Below are positions 3,272 through 52,927 of a stretch of 64,000 bases of DNA, piece after piece. The stretch lies in assembly GCA_964270895.1 (NCBI GenBank), contig OZ185442.1; one strand, given 5' to 3'. Origin of the DNA: Podarcis filfolensis (Eukaryota). Numbering within the stretch: position 1 is the first letter of the stretch; every line of letters begins with the position of its first letter. Under the pieces are notes generated by a model, which saw nothing but the letters and a program-made list of their open reading frames with translations, was not told where the DNA came from and ran no database searches. Made by a program: the position numbers and the translations under genes.

Positions 3272-4629
3272 TCACTCATTTAGCTGTTCCCACTGCAGAT
3301 TCACAAAAGTTCTGCTGTCCATCTTGTCAATATACAACACACCCTGCAGATGGTCCATCTCATGCTGGATGATGCGGGCTGCCCAGCCACTTGCCGGCCA
3401 GCTAAACTGCTCCCCGACTTCATTCAGACCTGAGGAAAGGAAAAAGAGGAACTCCAGTGAGAAATGCAGCTCTAGAGTCCTGCCATGCCTTAATGACTCA
3501 CTCCCCATGAAGGAACATGTATATCTGACTGAACTTTCCCCAAGCTGTAGGCCCAGTGCAGACTCCCTGCACCCAGAGAATATCTACCTGTCCCTGCTTT
3601 TTGCTGGCACTTATTGAAACCAGCTGTCCCCCTCAGTCCTGTCAAAAATTAGAAAAGTGACACTTAGGAAAGATTCCACAGCAGGACAGCATAAGCAAGC
3701 AGGAGAAACTGATGCTCCTGATGTTCTACCCACTCACTCTCCCCATTCCATTTTTCATACATAAATTGTCCCTTGCTACACCTCCTGTCTTCAGTCACAC
3801 CAAATAACAGAAAAGCAACATGTGAGTGTGCTACTGATGAAAGGCTTTGGCATAAAAACATGCACATTTTGACAGGCAGTGTGGGAAGAAGTTGTTTGGT
3901 GCCATGAGTTTGTACTTAGCTACGTTCCCACAATCGGAATGCATAATGTAGATTCCCGTTTGCATTAATAACACCTCTTAAGATCAACATAGAGCCAAGT
4001 TTGAACACCTGAGGCTCGCCACACACTTATACCAGCTCCAAAACTCGCACCTCATCCAAGTGTGTTAAAGCTACAAGGAATAACATTGCCAGCTTACCGG
4101 AAACTGCCACGGCTTGGTATCTGGCGACGCAAGCAGAGAAGCCACTGATGCTTTTACAGCCCTCGGGGAAAGAGACCAGTTGGGAGTCCAGCACCCTCAT
4201 GGATGGATTCACTACCACATGCAGGGGGAAGGGGGCCATCTGGCAAGCCTGGCGCATGCTGGGGGTGTGCTCATGAAAGAGCCTCTCAGGGAACTCCGCC
4301 ACAAAGATCTGGAGTGGCACACCTACTTGAGGAGCACTGAGACCCACACATTGTTCTTTCCTCATCACGCGAACCAGAGTACGGATGAGGGTCTGCACCT
4401 CACTACTGGCAATCTGTGAGGGCTCCACGGGGGCAGCCAGGGAGCGCAGAATGGGGTCCCCCACCTGGCAGACATGGCTGTAGGGTGGGGTGGGAGGTTT
4501 CAAGACTTTGCGCCGCAGATATTGCCAATAGGTGCGCTGCTTCTCTGCTGGAGAGGAACAAGTGTGGCTGCAACTTCTGCATGGTAAAGGTGCCAGGAAA
4601 GCTCTGTTCCAAAGGAGGCTGTCCAGCAT
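3272..4629 (-). CDS. PDF: Mitochondrial peptide deformylase; coding exons 4629-4098 and 3429-3272; 229 aa
   Basis: All three PDF motifs are present: [12 protein letters not shown] and QHEMDHLQG (HEXXH). The intron is phase 1 (G|GTAAG ... CCTCAG|GT). The first in-frame ATG is at 4629; an in-frame TGA at 4677-4675 rules out an upstream extension. Confidence 0.95.
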
Positions 4630-4821
4630 CCAGGCCAAGCCAGGCCTTAGCCTACAAACTGCCAAAATTGTGCTTCAGCCACAAAGCCATCTGTCCAAAG
4701 AGCAAATAAATATAAGATGAGAAAATAAAAACAATGCAAAGACAACAGGTGCAAGCACTCCCAAGGGTTACTGCTGGAAAGATTCTAGAGTCAAAGGGTG
4801 GCCTAGCTAAGATCACTGGGA

Positions 4822-5029
4822 GGGGAAGGGCTGGAGGCTGGCGCTCGGGCAGAGCATCCGCTTGGCTTTTGTATGATCCCAGGTTCAATACCCAGCAGTG
4901 TCGCCAAGTAAGGGCTGGAAGAGACACACAGAGACCCAATAGGAAACCCTGGAGAGCTACTGCCCATCAGCATAGCCAGTACTGAGCTAGATGGACCAAG
5001 GATCTGTCTACTCTGTATGGCATTTTCCT
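4822..5029 (+). mobile_element. Degenerate tRNA-derived squamate SINE (Squam3-like)
   Basis: It has a B-box-like GGTTCAATACCC and the 3' part TACTGAGCTAGATGGACCAAGG shared with the copies at 24614-24780 and 27995-28178. Confidence 0.6.
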
Positions 5030-5189
5030 GTGACTCTGCAGAGATGGAAAAAGCGGGCTTCTCTGCAAAAGAAATACAGAAAGATTCTAAGATTTGCAGC
5101 AGCAAATCTAACATTTGCAGCAGCAAAATTAGGAGGCGGAATGTTCTGTACCCCTTCCAATTAAATTTTGGATACCTCTCTTGTATATA

Positions 5190-5370
5190 TTATCATCATC
5201 TATTTATTTCCCTCCAAGCAGCTCACATGGTTCCTTCCCACCGATATTTTAATTCTCCCAATAACCCGGTGAGGTAGGGATATGCTGCGGGAGAATGAAG
5301 GGTCCAAGGTCATCCGGTGAGCATCATAGGAATGAGCGGAGGACTTGAACTCAGCTCTCCCAATGCACTC
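5190..5370. mobile_element. MIR/CORE-like SINE fragment
   Basis: The stretch AATAACCCGGTGAGGTAGG...CCAAGGTCATCCGGTGAGC...GGACTTGAACTCAGCTCTCCC resembles CORE-type SINEs (recalled). Confidence 0.5.
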
Positions 5371-5500
5371 TTGACCAGCAAAAGGCCAGAACTCTGCTGC
5401 TGGGCTTCTACTTGCAGGGAGGCTCGTTCTAATTTATTTTAACATCGAGGAGTGTTTCAAAATGTGGGTCCCCCACCCGCAACCAGGACCTCAGCCCTAC

Positions 5501-5581
5501 CTGACTCCAAGTCTCAAGTTTCAATGGGGCCGCCCAACTTCCTGTCTTGACAAACCACGCGAAGAGAGGAAACCGGAAGTG
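5501..5581 (-). promoter_or_regulatory. Candidate PDF promoter and non-coding first exon
   Basis: This is a small CpG patch with ETS/GABP motifs ACCGGAAGTG (5572-5581) and ACTTCCTG (5537-5544) and a GC box. A minus-strand donor CAG|GTAGGG sits at 5501/5500 and pairs with a polypyrimidine acceptor at 4691/4690. Confidence 0.55.
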
Positions 5582-5938
5582 CCCGTGGATGCTGGGAAAT
5601 GTAGTTCTCAAAACAAAGAACGGCACCACTCCGTGGCAGGCGGGGTTCTTGCAGACGCTTTAGGTCAGCTTCTTCCATAAGAGGATGCGGTTGTGTAGCG
5701 AAGGGGAGAATAACATCCCTCTTGAAGTGACAGGTTTTCCCCATCATATCATTGGTGCAGCTGCCTCAGGCTCATCTGCTTCACCTCAGCCCTGCTGCTA
5801 AAGTCTACAACAGCAAGTTTAAGCCCTGAATATTTGCTGCATTTCCACAGATGCACCCCTCAACTACCTGCTAGGGGGGGAAATCCTTCCAACCAATCTA
5901 GACAAAAATTGTTCTAGCCTTTTCTGTGCAGAGACTTA

Positions 5939-6865
5939 CCGTATTTTTCGCACCATAGGGCGCACTGGACCATAGGGCGCACCCAGTTTTTAGGGGGGGG
6001 GGAATCAAGGGGAAAAAAATTCCCCCCCAGCCCCAAAGAGCAGCGTACAGGCTGCGCACAACCTCTCCCTGCCGGAGGGGTTGCGCGCGGCTATGGCACA
6101 AGCCAAGGCAGCGAGCAGGATGGATCCCGCTCGCTGTTTTGGCTTCCCCTTTAGCCCCGTGCAGCCTCTCCTTGCCAGGAGAGGCTGCGTGGGGCTAAAG
6201 ACTCCATAGCCCCGTGCAGCCTCTCCTTGTCGGAGGGGTTGCGCGCAGCTATGGAGCAAGCCAAAGCAGCAAGCGGGATGGATCCCGCTCGCTGTTTTGG
6301 CTTCCCCTTTAGCCCCGTGCAGCCTTTTCCTCCCGGGAGAGGCTGCATGGGGCTAAAGAATCCATAGCCCCGTGCAGCCTCTCCTTGCCGGAGGGGTTGC
6401 ACACAGCTATGGAGCAAGCCAAAGCAGCAAGCGGGATGGATCCCGCTCGCTGTTTTGACTTCCCCTTTAGCCCTGTGCAGCCTCTCCTTGCCAGGAGACG
6501 CTGCGCAGGGCTAAAGAATCCATAGCCCCGTGCAGCCTCTCCTTGCCGGGAGACACTGCGCAGGGCTTTCCTGAGAGGTGGGGGGATTCACCCACCTCCC
6601 GCAAAACCAGCAGAAGCCGCGCAACTCCTTTAAAGAGATCGCGGCTTCTCCTGGCTTTTCTGGGAGGTGGGAGAAGGGACTGATGCGGCCAGTCAGTCCC
6701 TTCTCCCTCCTGTGGAAAAGCCCGCAAGAGCGCACGGAGCTTGTGTGCAGCTCTTGGGGGCTTTTCCCGCCTGCCTCCCCCCTGCATTCGCTCCATAGGA
6801 CGCACACACATTTTCCCTTGCTTTTTAGGAGGGGAAAAGTGTGTCCTATGGTGTGAAAAATACGG
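5939..6865. mobile_element. Non-autonomous TcMar (Tc2/Kanga-like) DNA transposon, 927 bp
   Basis: The 27-bp TIRs are CCGTATTTTTCGCACCATAGGGCGCAC and CCGTATTTTTCACACCATAGGACACAC (24/27 match). TA target duplications are at 5937-5938 and 6866-6867. No transposase ORF is present. Confidence 0.85.
6062..6560. repeat. 158-bp GC-rich tandem repeat, 3 full units plus a partial, inside the MITE
   Basis: Units start at 6062, 6220, 6378 and 6536. The marker GGATGGATCCCGC recurs at 6118, 6276 and 6434, a period of exactly 158. Confidence 0.9.
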
Positions 6866-7194
6866 TAATCCAATTAAGACTCCCTCACACTTACCTGCTA
6901 CCTTTTTAGGACACAGTCCACCCTTCTCTCCCTGCCTCCTGTCCACTTTGCTTAATATCCCCCCCCCAAAAAAAGAGAGAATTTTGAAGCATTCAAAATC
7001 TCACTCACTTGTTGTCCTGAGCCATTTTAACTTGCCCTGGTGATGGAGCTGTTGTTTTAAATTTGTTTATTTCTAATCTACTAAAGCTCAGACAAACCAG
7101 GATCTAAACTCTTCGCCTCCCTGTGGAATGCCCTCCCTTCAAATGTCAAGGAGATAAAGAACTACAGAATTTTTAGAAGACATCTGAAAGTTTT

Positions 7195-7283
7195 TAATGT
7201 TTGATGTTTTACTATGTTATATATGCTATAAGCTGCCCAGAGTGGCAGCTTATAGCATTTATTAATTATTATTATTATTATTA
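7195..7283 (+). repeat. 3' tail of a LINE/SINE ending in (ATT)n, containing a 15-bp perfect inverted repeat
   Basis: GCTGCCCAGAGTGGC followed by (ATT)n matches the tail at 30803-30876. The inverted repeat spans 7223-7258. Confidence 0.6.
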
Positions 7284-7703
7284 AAACCTCATTTCTTGGA
7301 CTTCAACTGCAGATGATATTGGCCTTGGCTAGCAGGTTTCCTCTTCCTGTAATTACCCTCTTCTGAAGGGACAGCTACAACCCAAAGCAGTTGGTAAGAA
7401 CAGTGGGATTCCTGCACTCAGCAAGTTGGACTTACCAAAGAAGAAATTCATACCTAGTCTGAGACATCAATGGAAAACTGGCAGAGACACATTTTATTCT
7501 GCAGCTTAAGGCATCAGGCAATTCCAGAGGAGAGGAAGATAAGGATGACACACGAGCATTTTTGGTGAATGGGGAGGCCCAGAAAAAACTGGTACTGACT
7601 GATACCTAAAGCAACTAGCTTTGAGAGAGAAGATTCAGGGGCCCACTCTTTTCACAGTACAGCATAGTGAGGTACAACACAGAGAACCAAACAAGCAATC
7701 AAG

Positions 7704-7709
7704 TTTATT
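7704..7709 (-). terminator. Candidate COG8 poly(A) signal AATAAA
   Basis: TTTATT on the + strand lies about 220 nt past the COG8 stop; a second one is near 7492. Confidence 0.5.
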
Positions 7710-7926
7710 CAAACCCTGATCCACCTTCACCAAAATTCCTTCCTCCCAGTGTCCACACCCAACTTCCTTCCCATCAGAGCAATGAAAGCTCAACTCAGTC
7801 TGTCCTTGAAGTGCTGAAGTAGAACCCAAAACCAAGAGCTGTGCCTGCCCATGGCAGGAATGAGTCTCTCCTCAGTCAGGTTCAAGTGTCATGGAACCCC
7901 GGAAAACAGGCAAAATCCAGTGAAAA

Positions 7927-10900
7927 CTATTCTAGAGGAGCACTCAGCAGCAAGGCATCACCAGAAGCTGCACTGCTCTCTTCTGCTTCCAGAACAGGGA
8001 CTGGGGCACTGGGATCTGCCTCCTGCCTGGCATCAGGGAGTTCCAAGTCCAATGGAGGAGGTGCTAGGCTTTCTTCAGTCAGCCTTTTCTCCTCAGACAA
8101 GGGAGATACAGTCTCTTTCTCCGGCAGGACTGAGGCCAGGAGCTCCTGAATCAGCTGCTCATCCACACAGCCAAGACTGCCATATTTGTGCAGCTGTGTT
8201 GGGGGAACACCTAGCAGTAAAAAAAGAAAATATATTAAAATGAGAAGTTAAAATCTTACATCAACCCTGAGCTAGAGAACATTCCCTGTACTACTGCCAA
8301 TTCTCTCTCTCTCCCTTCCCCTGGCAGTAGCCTGAGCTGTTGAGCACAGATTTCAATGACTTGCAGGCTTACAAGGACCACCACCAAGCAACCCCACCCC
8401 ACCATGTGCTGTTCACAAAGTCACAAGCAGAAGCCACTCATCCACCACAGGCCAGGGCTCAGCTGCAAGCTCCTTCCCCACCAAAAGTATTCAAGCAGCC
8501 ATACCCAAAGTCTGTGCAATTTGTGCTGGGGGAAAGAGGAGCTGCAGACAACGGTTGAGGTAGGGCACCAAGTCTTCCAGAAATGCCATGCAGAAGTGAA
8601 TGAACAGCTCTTGCTCTCGGCTGCTGAAGGCCACAGCCTCTGCCCGGTGGAAAACCAAAATGACCTTTGTCACCTGCAAAGAGAAAAAAGAGAAGCTAGA
8701 ATTTCTTGGTTTGGTGTCCAAATGGAAGGAAGGGTCTGCAGTACTACTCAGCATGCCAGCCTCATCAAATGGTCAAAATAAAAGCCCAGCTAATCGGTCT
8801 GGGACACACCCAGAAGCTGAGTGAAAAGATGTCACATACTACCTTATAGAGCAGGGACTGAGAACCTTTGATCTCTCAAGTGCCACAGTCTCCTGGCAGG
8901 CAATCCAGCAGGGGCCATTTGCTGACTATGGGTGGTTAGAGCTAGTGGTGAGCAAGTTCAGTAGCAAAAACAGGCGAGGTCAACCACTTTCTCCTTCCTC
9001 TCTCTCTCTCTCCCCCAGCCCACCCAAAGCAGGGACTGATTGCTGTTGTCAGATGCCTGAACTAGTTGCTTGCAAAGGGCTTCTTGAAATAAGGCAGAGG
9101 CTCATCCCTGAACAAACAGACAGCAGCAACATGAGAGGGAACAAGCATAAACTCACAAACATGACCTGCCAAGTTGCTGAAAAGGGCTAGGAAACTCCAA
9201 GGAGTATGACTAAAGATAAGGCTGCAAGCAGCTAAAACTCTGCTGCTAGCAAATTCCTGTCCTGTCACCTAGACATCTGGAGCATTTTTAATCCAGCCTC
9301 TTGGTGCACATGAGCAACAGAGAGCCCCACCTGGCCAAGTGCATCCTCCAGGGTAGCTGCCACGTCTGGGGCAAGAGCCACAGGGCAGCAGAGGCGCAGG
9401 TCGTTGAAGGCTACCAGGATGTTGTTGAGAAAGCAGGCGAGTGGTGGGAAATCTAGCAGCACCATGGGGGGCTGCAGGGTGCCTGGCTGGGTAGAAGGAG
9501 CCACTGCTACAGGGATGGTGCTGCTGCTGCTGCCCAAGGCAGTTGGCACAGAGATTAGCGTGTAGGAGTTCATCTCCTCCTGGAATTTGTTCACAGCTTC
9601 CTGCATGGCTCTCTTGAAGGTGACCAGTGCCACCCGCTGAAATATGGGGATGAGCAGGCCCCGGAAGTCCGCTCCAACACGGCTGAACGAGAGGCCAAAG
9701 TACATGCACTGGCCCAGCAGGGAGTCCAGGCGGCTGCCCACACCACGCTGCAAGTCACGCTCAAGCACCAGCAGGAACTGGGAGACCTTCTGCAGGACCC
9801 ACCCATGGAAGATGGCACTTTCATTGAGGGTGTCCTGCCCAGGGGGAGGCACCAGCGGCTCCTCGTCAGCAAAAATGGCACGGTACTGCGTGACAATGTC
9901 AAAGAGGTGCACGCGGCAGGCCTCGATGGTCTTGGTAATATGCACGTAGGGGTCGTCACCAGGAACAGCAGCAAGGATAGAACGTAGCCAGATGTCCCGT
10001 GCCTGCAGAAAAGTAATTCGTAGCTCAGCCTCAGTGAAGACATCCATGCAGCGAAGGTAGCCAATGATGCGCAAGCAGGCTGGCAGCTGAATGTTGGTGC
10101 GAAGCTGCTGGATCAGCTGCGTAAGCATGAGCTGTGTGGACTGGCGCACCTCTGCCACTATGCCCTGGGAAGGAGAAGAGAGACAAAATAAACTTCTGTT
10201 ACCCATGGTACCCAATCCATGCTGATCTCAATACTGCACAAACTATTTTATTTTCACTAGAGTCCTTATGGTCCATCCATGTGATCACTTAAGAAAGGGT
10301 CTACAGGTCACTGATAGATATACGTGTTTGATATACTAGCTATACTCTGGCTGCCAAAGTAGACAATATTGGGCTTAGTGCATGGTCAAACCTGGTATAA
10401 CTGCATGTTATAATGATGTGTACTTTTGGGAACTTTTAAAGAGGTATAACTTGCTGTTATCCTGAGTTCCTTTGGGAGGAAGAGTGGGATATGAACGTGG
10501 TAAATAAATAAAGTGTTGTGACCTTAAGAATGCATTCTTCTTTGCAGATGGAAGAAGGGCTTTACTGGATCAGAACAGGGCCTGCCTCATCTCAGCTTTC
10601 TGTACAAGAATCCCTGCAACTAGCAAATTAGACATTAGCCAAGAGTTGTTAGTCAGTGATGGGGTGTGGTCTACCTTCTATCTACCCCTGCTTTACAGAT
10701 TGCACTTAAAGAGATCAGTGGCTTGTATCCTGCTCTTGTTTAAAGTCAAAGAAATAGATCCCCTCAGCACGTGCACAAACCCTGGCTGCAATAAGCAACA
10801 TAAGCACTTAGTCAAGAAAAAAGGCAACAAGAGAAGAAGCCTCAGATCCAGAAATATTCTGGCTTCTACAAAGAGAACATGACAGCTCATGATGGTCCAG

Positions 10901-11892
10901 GATTGTGGGCCTCGGGTATCACCTGGATCAAACTTAGGAAACCAGCACAGAAGCCACACTACCTCTGCCTCTGTGAGCCATGGCAGAGAAAACAAATGCA
11001 AAGGGTTGGAGATGCCTTTCTTCGCTAAGCTTTTGCTCAGGTCCTGAAACTCTAGTAGCAAATGGTTGGGACCTACTATCACCGTATGGCTTAAGGCAGC
11101 TCTGGCACCTGCTAGGCTCAGAACATGTCTGCACCTGGATGACAGGGATGGTGGCATGCTTCTTCTCCAGGCGGCGGACGTAGGACACCAGCTCCAGGGC
11201 CTCCTCGTAGTAACTGTTGCGGACACAGGTGTCCATCAGCTGGGGGATCTCCAGCACTTCCAGGATCTCTGTGTGGAGGTTCAGAGTCAGGCTGTTCATA
11301 CGGCGGTTCTGAGCGATCTGTTCAGCCTCCTGCATGAAGTTCCTGGAGGCAGGAGCAAAAGAAGAAGAAAGCAGGTTAGGCCAGGAAAAGCAAAGGGGGA
11401 AGCCAGCCAGCCAGCCCCCTCTAACCCACCCATTCCAATGGCAGTGAGTTCCATAAGTTAACTGTGGGGCGCCCCAGGATTATTCCTGCCCCCAAAAGGA
11501 GTGTGGCGGCAGCCTTGGCCTCCAACTCCTCCTGCTCACCGGCAGGCCTCGGCGAAGGGTGGGAGGCGGCCCAAGAGGCGGTCGAGGCCCTGCTCGATGC
11601 CACCGAAGCCGCGACGCGTCTCAGCGGTGCATTCGGCGGAGCGGATGAAGGTCTTGTAGTGGGCGAAGGCCAAGGCACGCGTCTGCGCCCCGAGCTGCGC
11701 TCGTTCCTCCGCCAACCGGCCGGGTTCCCTCCGCAAGGCCTCCAGGCCCAGCCCTGCCAGCGCCGACAGGTAGGTCGCCAGCTCCGCGTCCCCCGCCGCC
11801 AGGGGCGGAGGCAGCGGCGAGGTCGCCCCGCGGAACAGCCATGCCAGCAGGCTCGCTTCCTCTAGGTCCGCCGAAGGCTCCGGGGCCGCCAT
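7927..11892 (-). CDS. COG8: Conserved oligomeric Golgi complex subunit 8; exons 11892-11540, 11342-11135, 10164-9331, 8673-8505, 8210-7927; 615 aa
   Basis: Five GT-AG exons join in frame (1848 nt). They contain Dor1/COG8 motifs LAFAHYKTFIRSAEC, LEIPQLMDTCVRNSYYEEALEL and LLGQCMYFGLSFSRVGADFRG. The stop TAG is at 7929-7927. Confidence 0.95.
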
Positions 11893-15630: not shown

Positions 15631-19594
<3,964 letters not shown>

Positions 19595-23640: not shown

Positions 23641-24072
23641 GTTTGTGGATAGAATATATCTTATTCTACTGTCTTTTTACTTTAACCTTATTTATAGCAT
23701 TTGTACTCCAGAAGATTATGGCATAATACCAGTTTATTAATATCACAGCAGACCTACAGTGAAAAATAACATTTATAAGAAAATAAAAAATTGAAATGAC
23801 GTATTTTTTATACTGTAAAATGTGCACTTTCCATACCAATTGTTTACACAAGGTTGAATCTGTATTTTCAGTACTGAACACTAAAAGGGGGAAAAAAAGA
23901 AACAAAATGGAGAGAGGGGGAGAGCCTATGTCAGAAAGCAGAGGGAGAAGCCTCCAGTGATGCTAAGAGATTGTGGCCATCAGCCTGCTGGCCCAATGCA
24001 ATACACTGCAAAAGTACCTCTGGCCCACCCTGTGTCCACATAGCGTTGGAGCTCAGGCACTTGCCCCCAGGT

Positions 24073-27000
24073 TCACAAGAGCCCCAGATTCTTCATCGTC
24101 CGCCATCGGTCCTTGATCGCCACAGGAGTGCGGTTCTTAAAGGGGAATGCCTGGGAAATGGCTTTCCACCTCCCTTCCCCAAACTTCTTCACGCCTTCCT
24201 TAATCCACTGAGACTCCTCTGAAGTCCAGATCTAGAAAGAAGAGAGCATAGGCTCTCATGAGCAACCATCAAGTGCTGCAAGACTTGCCCCTTGTCCCCA
24301 TGACAGAACAACAGATACACCACCCTCTGGAGATGGTTCCATGGCTGTTGCTAACAGAGGATTGCCACTGACATGGGATGTAGCCCAGTAACTCGCAGCA
24401 GGCAAATATCCAGCCCCTATTTCAAGACATTAAACCCAACTTGGTGGCACACTTAGTCCTCCTTCTGCAATATGTGGGTAATAAAAATAAAATTCTGCCT
24501 CCTTAAAGTGTGGTTGAAGAGGCCATCAACGATAGCAGATATAACGTGCTGAGATTGCCCAGGCTTCTTTGAAACACCTGGGTATCCAAGACCCTTGATT
24601 ATTTAATTAATTAGGAGAGGCCCCTTAGTCCAGTGGTTGAACATGCAGAAGATCCCAGCTTCAAACCTGTGACATCTCCAGGTAGAGCCACGAAAGAGAC
24701 ACCTGGCCTGAAACCCTGTAGCACAGACAATACTGAGCTAGACGGACCAGGATTCAGCATATGGCAGCTTCCTATGTTCCCATTAATGGGGATTTCATCA
24801 GTTATTTCATTTGGGAGAGCGGGTCCTCATCAACTGGCCTCCATTTAGAGAGGTCTTGTCAAGGCAGGCCTATTTCTCCCCACTGGAGTGCTCAGCTCCA
24901 GACTGGGTGTAGGCTTGGTTACCTTCTTTTTCGAACCAAAGAGGGAAGTGTTGATGCTGCTGCTGCTTTCTTCCTTCGATTCTGAAACACAAATTCATTT
25001 ACAAACTTTATGGGATGCATGGAACCACTCTCAGCAGTTGGGAGGTTTTACCACTACTGCACCTCATCAGAAATCCAGGGTAGTGGTCAAATTCCACCCA
25101 GCCCTTGGCATGATGTGTACAGTCAACTACTGATGGAACTATGTTAGGGTTGCCATACATCCAGGGCATCCCAGACATGTCCTCTTTTGGGGGGCCAACA
25201 GGCCCATCCAGGGGGATTTTTACATTTTAAAGGAAATGTCCGGGGTTGTAGGGAGGGGTTATTTATTCATTTATTGCTTGGCCAACTCTACACACCACTG
25301 CTGCCGCCAGCCCAAGCTGGGAAAAGAAGAATGTAGGTGCACTTCCTTCCCTGGCTCAGGCTGTCCTCTTTTTTGCTCTTTAAGATATGGCAACCCTAAA
25401 CTATGTGGCAAACAGTCATCCATGTTCACTCACAGTTGCCATCTCATTCTAGCACGGTTCACAAAATTTATCACTTTTTGCAAGATGTTTACCAGGTTTT
25501 GAGAGTTTTGCTTTTAGCTAGTCTGGGCATTGCCTAAGCAAGCCTCCTGAAGGACCGCAGTTAACAGTTCTCTTTGCTTGCCATGCTGGCAATGTTTTTC
25601 CCCATGTCATGGTGATGTCACTGGGTAATGCAATGTGAGAAGCCATCAAAACTGCACAGCTGCTTTAATTAGAAGAGTGCATGGAGCTACAATTGAGCAT
25701 CATGCAGAACAAGAAGCCAGTCTGAGGCAAAAGGCAGTAATTTTGGCAGTGCTGCTGCTGTGCACTTGGGAGTAGGTAGTCCAAATATTTTACTTTTCTG
25801 ATCCAAGAACTGTGCCCCCAAATCCCTCTGCTTACTGTATACAGGATACTAGCTGCTTACCAAAAAGTTCATCCTCATCACTCCAGACCTCCTTTTCTTC
25901 ATCCCGATTTAAACAAATTAGTCTCCTCTTTGCTAATCTGAATGCAACAGAGAAACACAAGTAAGGAAAGACCTACCCCACAAGGAGATGAGACGGGACT
26001 GAGCTGCATCAATTAATGTCGCACACAACCAGGATTATGGAGATGCTGGGTTAGTATCAGAAAAGGAGCGAGGTTAATTTGTCACAGCAAACACACCACT
26101 GCAGAGACCTATGGCAGCTTAAATATGAGCAAATAGCTGGTGGCAGAAACACAAACCCTTATCCTTGGTACAGACGGAAGGAGGGAGGGGGGAGAGAAAT
26201 AACGTTTTCTACCTTCTGTCTGGCAACTGAAGCTAACATTCCAGGCATCTGACAAAGCAGAGTCCGGCACAGGTGTTTCTGTCACAATAAATTTGTTTAG
26301 CAATCTTTAATGGGGCCAGAGACCGTATTGTCAATTCTGCTATCTTTGCAATCTGAGTAATAAAAATTAAGACAAGGTATGTGATCCAGATTCTCTCGCA
26401 ATCTGCTTCTACTAGCTGGGGGAGAAGATACACAGCGATGCAACCCTACCACTGCAAACCACCTTTGCCTTCCTTGGAGCTTCTGGGCTGAGGCCTAAGG
26501 CCTTCTAATGGATTCCTTGCAAAGGTGAAAGTTGCACCAAATGCCTCATGCTGTGCCAGTTCCCCAGCAGACCCCACAGCAGTCATAGCCTCTTACCTGG
26601 GATATCGGGAGGTATCATCAGGCTGGGTGGGTTTTTGGGGCTGTGCAGGCCGGACAACCAAAGTTGCCACAGGCCTCTTGGATGGAACTTGGCAGGAAGT
26701 TGGGGGGTTCCAGCTCTCTGACCCCATAACCAATGTGCTTATGGACACTGAGCGTTCACTGGGGTGCGGCCTGGAGGCGGCACGGTTCTTCTCCATTTGG
26801 CACTTGGCTGCGTGGAAATCAGAAGCCAAACATGGCTTGGGGAAAGTCCAGTCCAACTTGTCCAGTTTTGAAAACTCTTCATCTGCATCTGTGGAATTGG
26901 ACAGGATCTTGAAAGCATCCCTCAGAGTAGAAAACCCATACGAGCCCATCCTCTTAGGCGAGCATCTGCAAAATAAAGAAACATCAGAAGGTTGCTCCAC

Positions 27001-30000
27001 AAGTTTTGCCAATTTATGTTGCTGACCTCACCCCCAAGACTTTGCTCCCCTGGCAGCAGGTGCAATTTGAGTCTAAGTGCTGAGAGCCAGAAGTTGTATG
27101 GCAAAACAGCTGCCCAGCATGGCAAAGGGAGTCAAAACTGTAAGAGGCCATAGGCTGCTAACCTGTCAGAGTCACTGGAAACTGCTGAGACAGTGGCAAC
27201 AGAAACCACAGCAGGCTCTGCAGCTCCACTGGTTTCTTCTTCTGGCTTTGAAGCTGCCTGGCACTCATCAACCACTTTAGCAAGCTCCAAAACAGCTCCC
27301 TTTGCCTCCATCAAAGGCTTTGCAACTGTCTCACGGCCTCCCTCCAGAGACTTTGGCTGTTCTTCCACTGTATTTCTAGGCCCTGCCTCAGGCCGGGGCT
27401 CTTCCAAAGTCTCATCAGATCTTCCCACAGATTCAGGTTTATCTGCTGCTGCCACCTCTGAGGTTTCTTTCACCATTTCCTCCTTGCTGGCCATTTCCAA
27501 AGGATTGAGCCTGGTCTCTATCTGATCATCCGAATACCTTTTTGCCATCTTAAACAGAGAATGTGAACACAGTTACTAGAGAACACTTCTCAACTTTATT
27601 TTCTTTTTTCTAGTTATATACAGCAGCCATGCCCAAGCTGGTGCCCTGAAGATGCTTTACCTACAAATCCCCTAATTGTAGGGCCTCATGATGCTGGAGC
27701 ACAGCCTCATGATGCTGGAGCTGTTGGGAATTGCTAGTCCAAAACATTGTCAGGTTACAAGCTTGATATATGTCAAATGTGACATTGGAGCCCTGTGCTG
27801 TTCTGCTGTGGGCTACTTTGCTCTTCACAAAATATTTCCCAAACACATAATAGTTTGGCCAGGGAGGCTTCTGTCTTAAGCCTCAGGTGCTGAATGTACT
27901 TTTTTGATCACAGTGTTTAGACGGCAAGAGTTCTGCTGTGGCAATGTGGGTGATATTCAAGTGCTCCAGCAACACACAGAAATATATGAAGAAAGAAAGC
28001 TGCCTTATGCCAAGCCAGACCAATGGTTCATATAGTTTCTTATCACCACACATTGAGTGACAGCGGCTCTCCAGGGTTTCAAGCAGGGGACATTCCCAGC
28101 CCTACCTAGAGAGCCCAGGGATTGAACTTGGGACCTTCTGCATGCAAAGTAGATGTTCGACTACTAAGCTATACTCCCACTACAACATCCCACATCTCAA
28201 TCAAGCAGCACTCCACACCCTTGCTTACCTCTAAGAGAAAGGGCTCAGAGTCACTCAAGCAGCTTTCTAAATACAGAAGTATTCTCTGCTGGAAAGCTTT
28301 ATAGGAGAAGTTCCAGATGGCTGGATGAGCGAAGTTTTTTTCTCGGATGATGCTCTGGAACATCGACCTCATTTTCTAAGCAAGGGGAAATGTTTTTCAG
28401 TACTTGCAAGCAAATTGCAGCACAGGGCAGAGATAAAAGCAATTTTTGCAGTCATTAGAAGTTTAAACAAAACAAGCCAAACCACCAGAGCAGTCTAGGT
28501 AATGTCAAAAATGCATGAAAGTAATGATGACTAGAGATGTGGACCACAATCTGTAGCAACATGGGCTGCTTGTGGATGCAATTTTTCTCATTGCGTAAGG
28601 GGGACAATAAACTCTCAAGTATTTAAGACACTCACTGAATTGGAGAATGTGGGAAGGACAAACCATGACTCTGCTTTGCAGTGAAATGACCCTATAAGAG
28701 GCACATTTCAACAACAACAGTGACATGAACTCATACCTGCTGAAAGCTCACCTGGGAACTTGGGTCCTTTGACATGTGTTTCCTCAAGATCTTGCTGGCT
28801 TGTTCATATTCTTTGTTTTTTAGACAGGTTATAACAGCCTGGAGAAGAAAGACAAAATAATGGTTTGCAAGGAAGACTTTGGGGGAATGTTCCTAATCTA
28901 AGAAGATACTGTTCGAGAGCTATCCCTCTGACAATTTTCTAGATCTGCTTCACATTTTCAACCCAGTGTGTTTTCATTGTGTAATATTAGACCACTTATT
29001 AAAGAATTAAAAAAAAATTCAAGTAAGGCAAGTTACTTAAATGTCTGTAGGCTAACAACATTGAAATAATGTATGCCTTAGGAATGTCAAGAAGCCAGCT
29101 TTTCCTGGATTGTCCCCGAAGGAAACAAGTTTTCAAAACATGCTGAGTTCCAATAAACTCAGGCACTTCTGAGGAGACATTTCTCTTTCATTTGATCCCA
29201 ACATATAGGAATCGTGCCTCCTTGCTTCTATTAACTTTTGTGAACTTATTTAAAAGTCCAATTTAAGCATGGAGAAAAATAGGCAAGAGTTAATCCTGGC
29301 ATTGAATTAGCACCTTAATTAAACCCTTTCCTAAATATACTGCATTTTGAAACTCAAGACAGCTGTCCTCATACTAACTAGGCTGAGAAACAGTAATCAG
29401 TGCCTACAGAAGAGGAAATGCTAACACTTACTGCTTCCTTTATTTTATTTCTTATTTCTTCTATTATATCAATGCCTATGTCCAATTCATTCTTCATCTT
29501 ATCCAAAAGAACAAGGGCATATTCAAGAGGTGTTAACTTGGTCTTGGTATCAATGGTCCAATCTTCTTCAATCCTAGACAGAAGCTGGATAATCCGCAGC
29601 TGAATGCCAATGCGTTTCTCTAGCACTAGGGGCCTTGCAAGCACAGCTGGAGAAGAACAAGACAGTCAAAACAGCCACTAAGCAAAATCAGATAGTTCAG
29701 CAAACCAAAACAAGGCTTGGGCCAGGGCACCAAAGCCCTGTCCCATATCTTGTATCCCTGGCCATATACAGACAGACGGCTTCATCCCAACATGGCTCCT
29801 TTGGCCCAGGAGTCACTTTGCATTTGCTTGTTTTTTTTGTGTGTGTGATCTACAATATCCTTTAGTATCTATATATACACAAACACTTTTTTTTTTAGTG
29901 TCTTAATCTTTGTGGTGAGAGATCTTGCTGGGGCTCGTTTTGTGGGGCAGAAATGCAGTATGTACAGATTTTATTTATAGACACACAGAAGTAATTACTG

Positions 30001-31186
30001 TAAGAAAATGAATGGTAAAGTACAGTAGTTGAGATTCTTAGAACTACACTCCAAAGGTGCTAGGCCATTCTTAACGGTTGGCTTCTGGAAACCAGCACAC
30101 TCAACTACAGCCCACACCCAAAACTCATTAAACTCAATCTCTTAATACACACATCAACATTCTCCAATTTGAAATAGATTTCAAGAGGGCTCTGAAATTT
30201 TCATGTACTTAGGAGGCTAAAGGCAGCCGGGGGCGGGGGGGGGGGGATCCTGACCATCTGTGATGGGCTTTAGGAAGCATTCATTTAAGGGGGCATATAT
30301 GTATCCTAACCATCTTCCTGAGAATCACAGCTGGCTGTTTTCAGACCGACCTTCTGGGTTCTGTGCTGTTGGTTAGTTGTACTTGGTGCATTTTCTTTAA
30401 AAATCATTATTGGATGAATTTCCCCCTAAACTGATTTTAGAACTTTGAATTGTTATTCACGCTTTTATACTGTATTTTATGCTGTTTTTTTTTTTGTTGT
30501 ATCACAATTGTTTTAAATTTGTTAGCCACCCTGAGCCCGGTTTTCTGAACCGGGAAGGGCGGGGTATAAATAAAAATTTATTATTATTTCCCTTAATTTC
30601 TAAAGGCAAATGACAAACGTTCCAGGGACACAGACTGTATTATATTTTAATTTGCTTTAGGTTCATTATTTCTTAAATGGAAACACCTAATGACTATTAA
30701 ATGTAATATATAAATGTAAATAAGCAACAGTGACATAAGTGGAACCAGGGCTATTACGTGACATATTTTAATGCTTGATGTTTTAGTATGTTCTGATATG
30801 TGCTGTGAGCCGCCCAGAGTGGCTGAGGAAACCCAGCCAGATGGGCGGCGTATAACTAATAAAATTATTATTATTAGTTATTTACACTCACGTTCCTTAG
30901 CAGGAAATACAGTTATTTAACCCAGCGAGAATGTTCCCCAAATGCCCCTTTCGTAAAACAAACTGGTCTCCTCACCGTATATGACGTCGCGCAGCTGGCG
31001 GAAGTCCTGGCTGCGGCCGGCCCGGAAAGCCTGAAGGGCCCGGTGGGCGTAGAAGAGGATGGCCCACCGGTTCACCGCCTCCTCCAAGGCCTTTTCGCGA
31101 GCCTCCGCGGCTCCTTCGGGCGATGCAGCAAGAGACGCTCCAGGGCCACCGCCGCCGCCCGCCATCTTCCCTCTCCCGCGCGCCAT
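24073..31186 (-). CDS. TERF2: Telomeric repeat-binding factor 2; 9 exons 31186-30976, 29646-29432, 28838-28752, 28375-28229, 27548-27163, 26965-26597, 25937-25861, 24981-24923, 24231-24073; 569 aa
   Basis: It has a TRFH domain ([32 protein letters not shown]), a RAP1-binding motif ([13 protein letters not shown]), a TIN2-binding-like SISTLVM, and a telobox Myb domain ([21 protein letters not shown]...IKDRWRTM). Splice phases are consistent and the total is 1710 nt. Confidence 0.93.
24614..24780 (+). mobile_element. Squam3-like SINE in the last TERF2 intron
   Basis: It has a tRNA-like head (TAGTCCAGTGG...CTTCAAACC) and the 3' end ACTGAGCTAGACGGACCA...GGCAGCTTCCTATGTTCC. Confidence 0.6.
25145..25398. 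mobile_element. hAT-family MITE, 254 bp, in a TERF2 intron
   Basis: The 13-bp TIRs TAGGGTTGCCATA / TATGGCAACCCTA are perfect. The 8-bp target duplication AACTATGT is perfect at 25137-25144 and 25399-25406. Confidence 0.92.
27995..28178 (-). mobile_element. tRNA-Ala-like SINE (Squam3-like)
   Basis: The minus strand begins GGGAGTATAGCTTAGTAG...TTGCATGCAGAAGGTCCCAAGTTCAATCCCTGG (A and B boxes) and continues into a SINE body rather than a tRNA 3' stem. Confidence 0.7.
30380..30876 (+). mobile_element. Two LINE/SINE 3' tail fragments ending in (ATT)n (about 30380-30590 and 30770-30876)
   Basis: Both end in the pattern AGCC(A/G)CCC..AG...GGGCGG(G/C)GTATAA followed by TTATTATT. Confidence 0.5.
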
Positions 31187-32369
31187 CCCGCGGGTCCTTC
31201 CCCTGACGTAGTCGGTGGGCGGGGCAGGAGGGGGGACCGCGGAGAGCAGCGCTGGCTCAGAGCCTGGGACCCTGTAGTCTCAGCACCGTCCCGGTCCTAG
31301 CAGTGCCCTCTCTGCTCGCCCCTCTGCCTGGAGGCCCACAAAGCGCAGAGGGTTGAAGGGAAGGCTATGGGCAGCTCGCCCCTCGCCGTGGCGCTGCTTG
31401 CCCAGGGAAATCAAGGGGGCAGCCGGGCAGATTCCAACAGACAGAGGCAGAGAAAGCGGACTTGGGGAGGATAGAGGACGGAGCACGAGGGCCGAGTCCG
31501 GGACACTGTCTCTGGCAGGGGGTTTCTAGGGTGATGGTTGCTGCTGCAGTTGCGCTGCACGTCCGAAGTCACCAGAGAGGGGGATCAAGATGCCCCGACG
31601 GCTGGGGGGGTGGGATCATCTGCAGCAGTTGCCAGATGCTCCCGTGTTGTCTCTTGTGCCTCTTCAGCCAATCAAAGGGAGCTGCTGTTTCTCCCTCTCT
31701 CGTTTCATGCTGGCCAGCTTCCTTCACGCCTATCCGGCCTGCCTCGCCCCTTCCAGGAAGGCGCCCTACGCCTCTGCCTCGGGCAGCCTGAGGAACGGGT
31801 CCCGGAGATCGGTCCTGCTTGGTTGGCTGGAGGAAGGGACTTGGAGATGAAGGCGGTGGGGTAAAGCCCCACCTGCGATTTCTGGGTCGGGAGACGAGTT
31901 GCATATGGGGCTGGGCTCCATAAGGACTTCGGACTGCCCATAATTTTTCTTCCGTTGTTGATATCCTTTTCGTTTCATATCACTCTGCGAAGTCTTAGCA
32001 CCCGACACAACATTGCGAAAAAACAATGGGCAACTATTCAAACTAGACCAAAGGGAGTGAAGCTGCATTAAAAGGGTTTTATTTTGCATGGGAAATGCGA
32101 GCGGTTTTTAAATACTATAAAACGCAACTTCTCGGCATGCACACGGCTTTCGGCTGCCCCTGAGCGCTAGATCTGCAGCCCTGCTGGGATCATTCCGGGG
32201 GGGAAGGCAGAATCTAATCGAGGCTGCCCCTAAACTCGGGAATTGAGAGACTATAAAAGAAGACGGAAGTTTTGCCTCTTATCTGTTTATAGTGCAGCGC
32301 GCTTCTTTGTAGCTCAGTTTCCGGCTCTCTGCCGGAAGTGGAGCCCATGTGCAACCTCCTTTTGCTGCC
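31187..32369. promoter_or_regulatory. TERF2/DHODH divergent CpG-island promoter region
   Basis: 1183 bp lie between the opposed ATGs. A CRE-like TGACGTA is near 31204, and ETS motifs are CGGAAGT (32264-32270) and CCGGAAGTG (32332-32340). Confidence 0.7.
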
Positions 32370-35300
32370 ATGGCGGGAGCTGCGGGCGCGTCGCTCTGGG
32401 TGAGGAAGGTCGCACAGTGGGCGGGCGCTGGGCTCAAGGGAGGGCCGTAGCTTCGTGCCAGAGCAGGCATTTTGCAGGCCGAGGTACCCTGTGAAGAAAG
32501 TGCCTTTGCTCTGCCGGGGAGAGCCTGGAGGGAGGCCCGCCTTTGCCAGTCAGAGCAGGCGATACTCGATGGGCAAATTATTTGCCCCCCGCAGCGCTCT
32601 GCGCGCGCGCACCCACCCACCCGTGTTGCTGGTTTGAAGCAACTAATGGGGAAATGCAGAGTAGATTATTCTGTCTTGAGGCGGGGCTAGATGCTCTGTA
32701 GGACGATATGCAGTCTTGCAGCTGTGGTTGCCCAGAAACAGGATACCAGCCTCCAATTCAAGGGGAAAGTTGCAACTCCTTCACTACTGTGACACCTATA
32801 AAAGCGTTTAACTCCTCTTACTGCTTGAAAGGGACTAAGCGAAGTTTGCAGGACAGGTATCATGCCTTCGAGAGAGGAAGGAGCCGATGCCAGTCAGAGC
32901 AAGCAGCCCTGACCTAGGTGGTCCAAAAATCTGTCGGGGGGGGGGGGCGGGAAGCAGCTTCTTGCCATTCCTGAGTGAACCGTGCAGCTTGAACGTAGTT
33001 GCTGGGAGGGCTCCAGTGGCCAGCTGTGAGAGCAAATCGTGTGTTGCTCCTTTGGGGTAGGCTGGAGCAACAGCCAAGGCAAGCAGAGGTTGAGCGGGTG
33101 CAGCCTTTGCTGAGCAGCAATGGTTCTGCCTGCCTGCCATGCAGCTGCTGAAGAGCGGGAGGCAGATTGCTTTACCAAAATGTCTCCTGTCAGATCCGGG
33201 CAGCCATTGCCAGGAGCCAGTAGTAATTGGAAGCTATGCCTTCCTTGTGTTTTGGCATCTGAAATCCTCCCCTTTTGCCATCCCAGGTAGTACCAGCAGC
33301 TCTTCAACAGGATTCCTGCTGCGTTTAGCCCTTTCAGAGTGCCCCATGCGGACCAGCTGCTTTCTCAGTTTTAGGGTCAGTATTTATCCCGACTGGGGTG
33401 ATGAGGCAGGGTAGCTTGGCCAGGTCTAGCCAAAGCCAACTTGGGGCTTTAACCCAGATATTCCAGACAGAGTTCTGTGGGTGTGTTAGGGTGGAGCAAG
33501 GTGGTAGACCTTCCTCCTCCTGTTCTCCAGGGGTTGGGTGGGCTGTAGGCTTGGGGGTGTATCTCACTCTCTTTGCTCTCCCAGCGACGCTTTAAGGAGG
33601 CAACAGTGATTCTCGGTGGGGGCAGCCTGATCTTCACCTCATACCTGGTGGTCAAGGGAGATGAGCACTTCTATGCTGCGCAGCTGATGCCACTCCTGCA
33701 GAGAGTGGTGGGCCCTGAGACAGCCCACAGGCTGGCTGTGCGCTTTGTGGCTCTGGGGATCCTGCCCTGCTCAAGCCAAGCTGACTCGGATGCATTGGTG
33801 CGTAAACTATGCAGGTGACTGGCGGTCAGAGGCTGCTGTGCTCCTGCTTTGGGCCCTGCCTCACATCCTACTGCTCCCAATCCCTTCCTGTGGGCCCACC
33901 ATGCCCTTTCTCTCCTGCGACAGGATGGGGCCTTGCCTGTCTCTTCTGCTGCCTAAGGCTTTCTGCTGGTTAACAGGTGCTTAATTGGCTTCCCAGGCAG
34001 TGGAAGTCTTTGGGCGCCGGTTTCGGAACCCTCTTGGCCTGGCTGCTGGTTTTGACAAGCATGGAGAGGCTGTAGATGGACTCTACAAGATGGGATTTGG
34101 CTTTGTGGAGGTGGGGAGTGTCACCCCAGAGCCCCAAGAGGGGAACCCCAGGCCCCGTGTCTTCCGGCTGCCAGAGGACCAGGCCATTATTAACAGGTAG
34201 GAGGCTGGAACAGAGGTGGGTGGCGAGGATGAGCCTTTGACAAGCCTCTCCTGCAGTGGAGGAGGAGGTGATGCATTGGGGAAGAGAGGGGTGGTGGTAT
34301 TCACCTGAGCTGTGTCCACAACTTTCTAGGTATGGGTTCAACAGCCATGGGCATGCAGTGGTGGAGCACAGACTTCGAGCCCGACAAGAAACTCAGCGTC
34401 AGCTCAGCTCAGGTGAGGTGGCTTGTGTCCTCCCTGCCCATGAGCCATGGAAAATCCCGGCCCCCTTCTTCCCCCCACCCAATTGCTGCTGTACTAGTAC
34501 ATGCTTGTGGCAGTCAGATCTGGAGAGGAGCTTTCAGGGAACGTGAAGAGTGGCAAGGAGCAAATAATGTTGCAGTTGATTAGTGGAGGATTTCTGGATC
34601 CTGCCCTGGACCCTTCCCAGAGCATCTCTGGTCAGGAGTGGTGCCTGCCTGAGTGCCAGTGGCTGCTTTCTTTTACCCAGCCCTAACAGGCCCACCGTGG
34701 CCCTGTGCTCTCCCTGGGGAAATCTCTTATGTGTCTGCCCCCTCATCAGGGATTCCTCATGTAGCAGTCATCTTTGCTCTGGCCTTCCCTGTCTGACTGG
34801 CTTCTGTTTGTGCATCCTCTCCCTTCCTAGCGGGGATGCCTCTTGGAATAAATCTTGGCAAGAACAAGGCCTCTGTGGATGCAGCAGCTGACTACGTGGC
34901 AGGTGTGCGTGTGCTGGGCCCACTGGCTGATTACCTGGTGGTGAATGTTTCCAGCCCCAACACACCGGGACTGCGGGCCCTTCAAGGCAAAGCCGAGCTG
35001 CGCCTCCTGTTGGCCAAGGTGGGTCTCTTGCCCCAAGAGCATTTCCTGTCCTCTCGGTCCCCTCCAGTAAGCAGCCAGGGTGCCCTCTGGCACACATTTC
35101 AGCGCCTGCTCTCTGGGCCGAGGGCAGCAGCTGCTTGGAGCAAAGGAGGAGCAGCCTGCTGCTCCCATTTCACATTTATTGAACAGTGCCTGGCAAAAGA
35201 AGGCCAGGGCTTTGCTGGTACATTGTTCACAAATCCTACTGCAGGAGTTGAGTGCATGCCTGATTGAGAACCTTGTACAAGTGCGGCAGCCTTGCCTCCA

Positions 35301-38300
35301 GATGTTGGTGGTGGACCAACAGGAGGCTGCTTCTATCTCGCCCTCCTTCCATACCTGCCCTTTGGATCCTGCTGTCGAGCCTCTCCTGCTCTGCAGAGCT
35401 CAGCTTCTGTCCCTAGTTCATAGCAGGGGCAGTTCCCCTCTCCCAGCCGTGTTGTGCTGCGCTCCATGGCTTGTAATCATGTGCCCTTTTGGGCAGTGTG
35501 AAACTTATGCCCTTCTGAGCAGTGTGAACGTGATCTTTGGCCAATGGCTGTGTGCTTCTTGGCAGGTGCTGGCTGAGAGGGACGCCTTGGCATGCAAGCA
35601 CAAGCCGGCTGTACTGGTGAAAATTGCTCCAGACCTCACGGCCCAAGACAGGAAGGACATTGCCAGTGTCGTCTCCGAGGTGATGCAGGGGTGGGTGGGC
35701 AGGAGTGGTTCTGTCTGGCTGCTGCCTCAATTATGCCTCGTTGGTTTGGCCTTTTATGCCTTGTTCTAGAGCAGCTCCCTTAAGAGATCACCTTGCCCCA
35801 TGTGGGCCTCTTTGATCACTTCCATCTGTGGAACTTGCACTTTTACACCTGCCACTCTGCACTCCTCGCAAGAGCAATCTTGTGAGCATAGCAGCACTTG
35901 GAACTCCCTGCCTCTTGATACTGGGCAGGCACCCTCACCATATTGCATTTGGCAAGCATACCCAGACATGTAATTTAGTCACCTATATCAGTTTTAAATA
36001 TTTATTGAATTTATCGTTGTTCTGAACTGAGGTAGCTGAACTGTGGATTTCAGCTGTGTTTTAGCTTAAGCTATATTTGTACGCTACTTGGGAGATATAT
36101 AGATTTTTGATTAAGTGGTCTTATGCATTTCCCTTAAATAAGAGTGAGAATGGGGTAGGGCTAGACTTTCAGGGCCACCAGCCACCACTATGGGAAGGAG
36201 GGCAGCGCATAGGAGGAAGCTGTGACTCTGAGGCTTGACTGTGCTCCCTTTTCCCCAGTTAGGCGTTGATGGACTGGTGGTCACCAACACCACTGTGAGC
36301 CGCCCCAGCACCTTGCGTGCAGCTCTTCGTGGGGAGGCTGGGGGTCTAAGCGGAGCTCCCCTGCGAGAGCTTTCCACTCAGCTGGTCAGCGAGATGTACT
36401 CTCTCACCCAAGGTAAGGAGACGGGCTGGAGGGAGGGAGGGGATGCAAGTGGGAGGGACTCCAGAATCCCTCCCACTAGCAGCCTCTTCTTGCCCCCCAG
36501 GACGGGTCCCCATCATTGGTGTTGGTGGAGTCTCCAGCGGGCAAGATGCCTTGGACAAGATCCGTGCAGGGGCCTCCTTGGTGCAGATGTACACTGCCCT
36601 CACTTACCGTGGGCCACCTGTGGTGGGTGCTGTGAAACAGGAGCTGGAGGCTCTGTTAAGGTGAGTGCCAGGCTGGGCCCAGCTTCTTGATGTCCCAAAC
36701 TCAGTGTTTGTGTGTGTGTGTGTGTGTGAGAGAGGGGGGGGGAGGGGTGCACCTAACGGACCCTCAATCCAGCTGTGTGTTACAAAAACATTATGCTGTA
36801 ACTTCAGATTCAAGCAAAGTTGTGCTGATTAAGAAAGCACAGCAGAATGAGATTGCTGCTAGCATGAGATTAGGCTGTAGAGGGAGCTGAGCAGACCACA
36901 AAACTGTCTGTCTCCCACCTAGGTTGTCATGCTGGGCTCCTTATTGCATGTATGCTCTCCATTTTCACCTCAAGAAGCTGATCCCTGTTACTCTTTACAT
37001 CAGCTTCAAGTACCCGGTCCTCCTTGCTTGATGTTCTGTGTCTCTCGCTCTGCCTCTTACACCCATTCCTTCTCTTCCTCCTGTTAATGGAGGAATCTGA
37101 GGGCTCCCTTGGACAAAAAACAGACACCAACCAGGACAATTTGGAGCAAAACAGCAGCCTGTAGGCGTGGCCTTTATTGGAAACTGTTGCGACAGGACTC
37201 CCACCCACAACAAGATGAAGCAAGATGGAAGTCCAGAGCAAAAGAAGTCTCCAACTTTTATTAGTTACTAATCCCCCAAACTACACCCCTAAAACTACAT
37301 CACAACTACATCATTGATACATCACAAAAAGGAGGGGTTGAGGGAGGAGGGGTGGCGGTAATCTGAGTGTCCCGTCAGCTGGCTGGTTCCCCCTTTCCCC
37401 CTCCTCATGAGTACTTTCCAGGTGACAAAGGGGAGTTTGCAGTTTCCTGCCCCCAGAGGGAAGAGCTGATCATTGTCCTTTGTTCCAGCCCGTGCTGAAT
37501 CCACTCCTATATGCAAGTTCTTTGTGACCTTGATGGTCTTCTGTGTAGGACCATCAGGGTTGGCATAGCAGCTGGGCAGGGCTCCTGTGTATGTGCTGGT
37601 ATGCTCAAGGGATTATGGCTGCCCTGTATCAAACCTCCATTTTTTAGTCCTTCCTTCATGGAGTAAAATAAAAGTGGAACGGTGCAGATCCGATGTATGG
37701 TTGATTTTCTATGAATTTATAATAGAAGCGTAGTGTATGTTGTGTGTGAGTGTGAGTGTGTGTGTCGAGTTTGTACAAACTGAATGATTGGGGGGGGGGG
37801 GTTCCTGCGACACTCCCACATTCTGCTTGCCAGCCAGCCTGCCTTTCCTCCAGATCTGCTTCCTAGCCCCTGGCACATCTCCTCTTGGAAGCCCCTGCTG
37901 CTGCCTATTCTTCCACCTGTCCCTTATCTCCAGTCTCAAATTACCTTCCACCTCCACCAAGACAAATTACCTTTTCTCCACCACAGTTCCTTTGTGTCAT
38001 TTTGTGGTCTGTGGAGCCCTGGCAGCATTATAGCAGTTGATGTCTGGGACAACAATAGTCCCAAAACAAATAATGACAGACCTTACTTTCTATTCTTTAT
38101 ACCCGTGCATCTGTTGCCTTATCCAAACAATCATATATGTACTACGTAGAGGAGAAAGTGGTCTTGATCCTGTGGGTATTTCACATCCTTGGTTTCCTGT
38201 GACTCGCCTGCAGGTCACAAGTCCCCTCCCCACAAAGTACAAGGTTCTGCTCTACAGGCATAAGCTTTTCTGGTTACCTTTTGTAGCTGGGGAGGGAGGT

Positions 38301-40672: not shown

Positions 40673-40949
40673 GTGAGGCTGAGGCGGGCAGGGCTCTGCC
40701 CCCGTTTCTGTCCCGAAGGCGAAGCGAGGCCGGGCAGCGGGTTGGGCGGCGCTGCTGCTGCTGCTGTTGCTGCCGCTTTCAGCGCGGTGTGTCGTCCAGT
40801 GGCAGCGCGTCCCGCGGGAGTCTGAACGGCCGAGCAGCCCCTCCAGCAGACCGATTCCCCCCGCCGCCGTTAGGCGCCACCCCCCTTGCCGCCCGGTCCC
40901 CGTCCCGCTGACTCGCGTGCCTCATTGCCTCCTCGCAGAGAGCCCTGCA

Positions 40950-52927
<11,978 letters not shown>

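Follow-up and report, generated by a model that had tools for sequence, protein, structure and literature searches.

The closest described counterpart of the gene analysed here is vertebrate TERF2/TRF2, represented for human by the TRFH chains 1H6P, 3BU8 and 3BUA. A lizard gene in the window (the whole 64,000-nt stretch of DNA under analysis) agrees with vertebrate TERF2 in its TRFH domain, its C-terminal Myb exon, its TMED6 neighbour and every intron position other than that of intron 2, but has nine coding exons rather than ten. Human TRF2 also contains the residues GENL, C118 and F120, whereas the squamate form is without GENL and has Trp and Ile in the other two places. Like the exact intron losses known elsewhere, the TERF2 case leaves the flanking exons intact, affects a housekeeping gene that is presumably germline-expressed and involves an intron of modest length (469-1184 nt in relatives). 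Losses of the reverse-transcriptase type classically show a 3' bias, the co-loss of neighbours or both, whereas TERF2 has suffered a single 5'-proximal loss. As with other rare genomic changes that serve to mark clades, such as indels or the presence or absence of an intron, the character is discrete, low in homoplasy and polarised by outgroups, although it corroborates a clade that sequence phylogenies already recover rather than resolving one.

Comparison of exon structures and protein sequences across amniotes points to what were very probably two events behind the arrangement in the window: exon 2 became 12 nt shorter on the stem of squamates and, much later, intron 2 was removed exactly along the branch leading to Lacertidae and Amphisbaenia. 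Searches of the literature on TERF2 intron loss and squamate intron loss returned nothing relevant. The loss of intron 2 is an apparently undescribed example of ordinary, clean intron loss rather than an amniote-level oddity.

The TERF2 gene in the window

TERF2 exons were placed in the window by tblastn with database TERF2 proteins, one exon at a time and unspliced, whilst comparisons of whole proteins used the database proteins rather than a spliced model of the window gene (Table 1). The acceptor of the fused exon, tcttctccAG, follows a polypyrimidine tract (AG at 29648-29647 in the window letters, minus strand), its donor GT lies at 29431-29430 in the context gtaagt, and the frame read from 29644 comprises 71 codons with zero stops. 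When compared with PDB chains by phmmer, residues 1-71 matched human TRF2 TRFH chains end to end (1H6P, 3BU8, 3BUA and others; E ~2e-7), and the sole gap spanned four residues after SRIEE, where the human protein reads GENL. A Pfam scan of the 71-residue piece alone, which is too short for the purpose, returned no significant family; PF08558 is present in those full-length lacertid proteins that agree with the window in each exon, and the Myb/SANT telomeric DNA-binding exon lies in the same gene as the TRFH exon. These results bear out the sequence-only reading in several respects: an uninterrupted 215-nt exon with a clean acceptor and donor is present, it falls 12 nt below the mammalian pair (96 + 131 = 227 nt), and the missing codons are those for GENL. 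The exon lengths of 96 and 131 nt, which that reading had given for human, were verified at non-human loci, in Ursus americanus and a turtle.

Table 1. Positions of TERF2 and neighbouring features in the window (a slash marks a splice junction or the former intron site)
Feature	Position	Strand	Basis or detail
TERF2 exon 1, coding part: short basic N-terminus and TRFH start	30976..31186	-	donor G/gtgagg
TERF2 intron 1, retained	29647..30975	-	tblastn and window letters
Fused TERF2 exon, homologue of amniote exons 2 + 3, part of TRFH	29432..29646	-	215 nt
Former intron-2 site, phase 1, G/AT of GAT (Asp) codon, between G (29563) and A (29562)	29562..29563	-	junctions of relatives and window letters
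Intron homologous to amniote TERF2 intron 3, retained	28839..29431	-	tblastn and window letters
Next TERF2 exon, homologue of exon 4, 87 nt	28752..28838	-	tblastn and window letters
TERF2 exon, homologue of exon 5	28229..28375	-	tblastn and window letters
Last TERF2 coding exon, Myb domain	24076..24231	-	100% identical to Podarcis TERF2
TMED6 exons, downstream of TERF2, same strand	15634..19390	-	same neighbour in turtle and gecko loci

Lacertids also possess TERF2-like copies, to which the fused exon is 81% and 71% identical, compared with 98.6% for Podarcis lilfordi TERF2. Because TMED6 adjoins the gene as it does in turtle and gecko, and because of this 98.6% identity, the window gene is, on locus and sequence, canonical TERF2 from a lacertid close to Podarcis and not the TERF2-like duplicate. 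Of its nine ancestral introns, intron 2 alone is missing, with the eight others kept (introns 1 and 3 among them), and this is the only intron by which the window gene differs from the gecko gene model. Across the join the window reads GAA GAA GAT TGG, as does the spliced skink sequence, and contiguous sequence is likewise found in the RefSeq models for Podarcis muralis and Lacerta agilis. On the strand opposite to TERF2 and upstream of it, ORF fragments at 33900-36700 (+) and 40900-42300 (+) resemble DHODH and DHX38 exons, to judge from their translations alone.

TERF2 exon 2 and the GENL codons across amniotes

Splice junctions around TERF2 exons 2-3 were mapped in ten genomic loci besides the window, with the black bear (Ursus americanus) rather than human DNA providing the mammalian gene structure; within Laterata, the sample, with the window counted in, comprised one amphisbaenian and three lacertid loci. 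Exons of 96 + 131 nt flank intron 2 in Ursus (648 nt) and Chelonia (1443 nt), and exons of 84 + 131 nt flank it in Gekko (469 nt), Lerista (984 nt), Anolis (1184 nt), Crotalus (513 nt) and the Komodo monitor, Varanus (663 nt). Gekkota, Scincoidea and all three toxicoferan groups in the sample therefore retain intron 2, and at each of the seven loci that have it, from bear to monitor, it is a GT-AG intron in phase 1 within the same Asp/Asn codon. The intron is absent from the window lizard, Lacerta agilis and the worm lizard Rhineura floridana, which each have a single exon of 215 nt, equal to 84 + 131 with no exonic bases gained or lost, and it is absent from the TERF2-like gene of Zootoca, in which the single exon measures 209 nt.

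Several database and contig records touch on the same intron. A database model for Phrynosoma platyrhinos leaves out precisely the 84-nt exon 2, which betrays a retained intron, and one Varanus komodoensis model reads into intron 2 (EEGECGEP) without splicing. Two Logan contigs (2192 and 1092 bp), one snake-like and one gecko-like, contain the 131-nt exon alone with intron read-through on both sides; such ORFs would be expected if additional snakes and geckos have kept intron 2.

At the protein level, an exhaustive HMMER search with the fused exon yielded 17 representatives, and further named orthologues were obtained from name searches. All named HMMER representatives were squamate save one turtle protein (Chelonia), and the squamate matches aligned to the fused exon free of gaps whilst the Chelonia protein contained GENL. 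The four residues were likewise present in tuatara (two Ensembl models), alligator, crocodile, kiwi, tinamou, ostrich, two turtles, platypus, possum and bear, the non-squamate amniotes sampled reading E-GENL-DC[ST]FD after SRIEE. The tuatara evidence consists of proteins and so informs GENL, not the intron. GENL was absent from 19 of 19 squamate sequences, which read EE-[DN]W.. instead and spanned three geckos, two skinks, a cordylid, Rhineura, a tegu, lacertids, two anguimorphs, two iguanians and two snakes. Since all squamates sampled are without GENL and the other amniotes sampled keep it, the four-codon deficit is, on this distribution, a squamate-stem character acquired after the tuatara split and not a peculiarity of the window lizard.

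Order and possible mechanisms of the two changes

The deficit and the missing intron do not occur in the same taxa, the former being squamate-wide and the latter confined to Lacertidae and Rhineura. Because five squamate lineages have an 84-nt exon 2 together with the intron, the 12-nt deficit predates the intron loss, and because the fused exon equals 84 + 131 nt exactly, the loss itself was precise. A single imprecise event, be it an intron loss or a genomic deletion, that took intron 2 along with the terminal 12 nt of exon 2, as the sequence-only reading had proposed, would account for the adjacency of the two differences from mammals when the window is considered alone, but it is contradicted by the same five short yet intron-bearing lineages and by the exact sum of the fused exon, and their gene structure and the tree argue against all five loci being mis-assembled or paralogous. 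That reading was right that an intron had been lost; its imprecision was not upheld, the chance that one event removed both segments now being very slight. It had also allowed for outgroups already in the short state, and such outgroups were found for the GENL part (gecko, skink, anole, rattlesnake and monitor), although they keep the intron.

The existence of a second TERF2-like gene in lacertids lends some plausibility to the idea that the fused exon is an artefact, either of an assembly collapse or of a partly processed paralogue having been taken for the working TERF2. We consider this highly improbable, given that the gene has zero N (24000-31400 of the window), keeps its eight other introns, has TMED6 downstream as in the canonical turtle and gecko loci and contains a fused exon that matches the annotated P. 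lilfordi TERF2 protein at 98.6% identity; moreover, the collapse that had been envisaged at 29563 is countered by the recurrence of the same single exon in the independent assemblies of Lacerta agilis and Rhineura. Nor is there more than a negligible probability that the single exon is ancestral in squamates, the other lineages having regained the intron, a formal possibility and nothing more, as bear, turtle and five squamate lineages have the intron at one position and in one phase, which would need several identical insertions.

In the two-event reading, the 3' end of exon 2 first became 12 nt (GENL) shorter on the squamate stem with intron 2 kept, giving 84 + 131 nt, and intron 2 was subsequently deleted to the base on the branch of Lacertidae and Amphisbaenia, giving the single 215-nt exon. 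This second step left introns 1 and 3 untouched and both the reading frame and the protein unchanged, and since the protein is unchanged, the intron loss was most likely neutral.

Loss mediated by cDNA classically shows a 3' bias and the removal of multiple adjacent introns, and a shelterin gene is expected to be transcribed in the germline. Neither 3' bias nor co-loss of adjacent introns was found in the window gene, where one 5'-proximal intron is gone and introns 1 and 3 stay. Transcript- or cDNA-templated repair, which predicts exact removal of the intron between intact exons, is the usual explanation of such loss in mammals, whilst for worms and flies a case has been made for end joining at junction microhomology (PMC3698931). 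Intron 2 of TERF2 could have been removed when a spliced transcript of the gene, or its cDNA, served as the template for repair or gene conversion, or alternatively by a junction-to-junction end-joining deletion. Junction microhomology amounts to 0-2 nt in five intron-keeping squamates, no more than the AG/G consensus provides, the lacertoid intron itself being gone; such low microhomology would make a weak case for end joining. We lean towards removal by a short transcript-templated conversion tract.

The shortening of exon 2 may have followed either of two routes. Outgroup exons end GAG GAG GGG GAG AAC CTC G/gt and squamate exons end GAR GAR G/gt gag t.. in the same register, such that in an ungapped alignment the squamate intron start GGTGAGT falls on the outgroup exonic letters GGGGAGA, although any consensus donor shows such letters. 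By the donor-shift route, a synonymous change from G to T at the third position of the Gly codon (GGG GAG to G/GTGAG) would have placed a near-consensus donor 12 nt upstream without altering the phase or the Asp codon. A plain in-frame 12-nt deletion would have produced the same exon, and the aligned intron starts are too diverged to separate the two routes.

Placement on the tree, the docking loop and the lacertid duplicate

In a quick maximum-likelihood tree of TERF2, Rhineura groups with the lacertids (SH-aLRT 98), and in the NCBI taxonomy Lacertidae and Amphisbaenia (Rhineura) are sisters (Lacertibaenia). The parsimonious reading of the loci sampled is a single loss on the stem of Lacertidae and Amphisbaenia. 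The node of the loss is bounded rather than fixed and could be older, on the stem of Laterata, of which teiids and gymnophthalmids form the other half. That intron 2 was instead lost twice, separately in Lacertidae and in the lineage of Rhineura, gains some credence from the sampling of one amphisbaenian and from the recurrence of intron losses in germline-expressed genes (PMC3698931). We nevertheless regard two losses as unlikely, as the two groups are sisters in both the taxonomy and the TERF2 tree, no other sampled squamate lineage has lost the intron, and one loss is more parsimonious.

The suggestion that the change might serve as a phylogenetic marker holds for Lacertidae plus Amphisbaenia rather than at a higher level. 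For this pair, the loss of intron 2 is a clean, polarised, low-homoplasy character of modest value that offers independent support for Lacertibaenia, a grouping recovered by sequence phylogenies and, to our knowledge, not by morphology.

The exonic change may have consequences of its own. Window positions 29552-29563 encode DWTI, of which Trp and Ile align to C118 and F120 of human TRF2. Canonical TERF2 of every squamate sampled has Trp at the C118 place and Ile, Val or Thr at F120, whilst all other sampled amniotes keep DC[ST]FD in this region, and the four-residue shortening in squamates adjoins the residue aligned with human F120. In human TRF2, F120 is required for binding the SLX4 and Apollo motifs (PMC4334113). 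More speculatively, and with low probability, the loss of GENL together with the changes of F120 to Ile, Val or Thr and of C118 to Trp may have rewired partner recruitment (Apollo, SLX4) by squamate TRF2. If true, the squamate-wide change in the docking loop may matter more than the loss of the intron. The shortening of the TRF2 docking loop is in any case dated to the squamate stem, with possible functional consequences for telomere biology.

The TERF2-like gene of lacertids, detected in Zootoca vivipara (positions 3001-11162 of the locus on contig OY735916.1) and Podarcis lilfordi, is itself intron-bearing and lies on a different chromosome-scale contig from TERF2. Its protein gave no match to PF16772 (RAP1-binding motif). 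Within the quick tree, the TERF2-like copies branch among the lacertids, later than the divergence of Rhineura, and because they nest there and share the fused exon, the duplication is placed after the intron loss; a later lacertid duplication copied a TERF2 that was already fused. The duplicate gene evolves faster than TERF2, and the Zootoca copy has an extra 6-nt deletion in its 209-nt fused exon and Phe instead of Trp at the C118 place.
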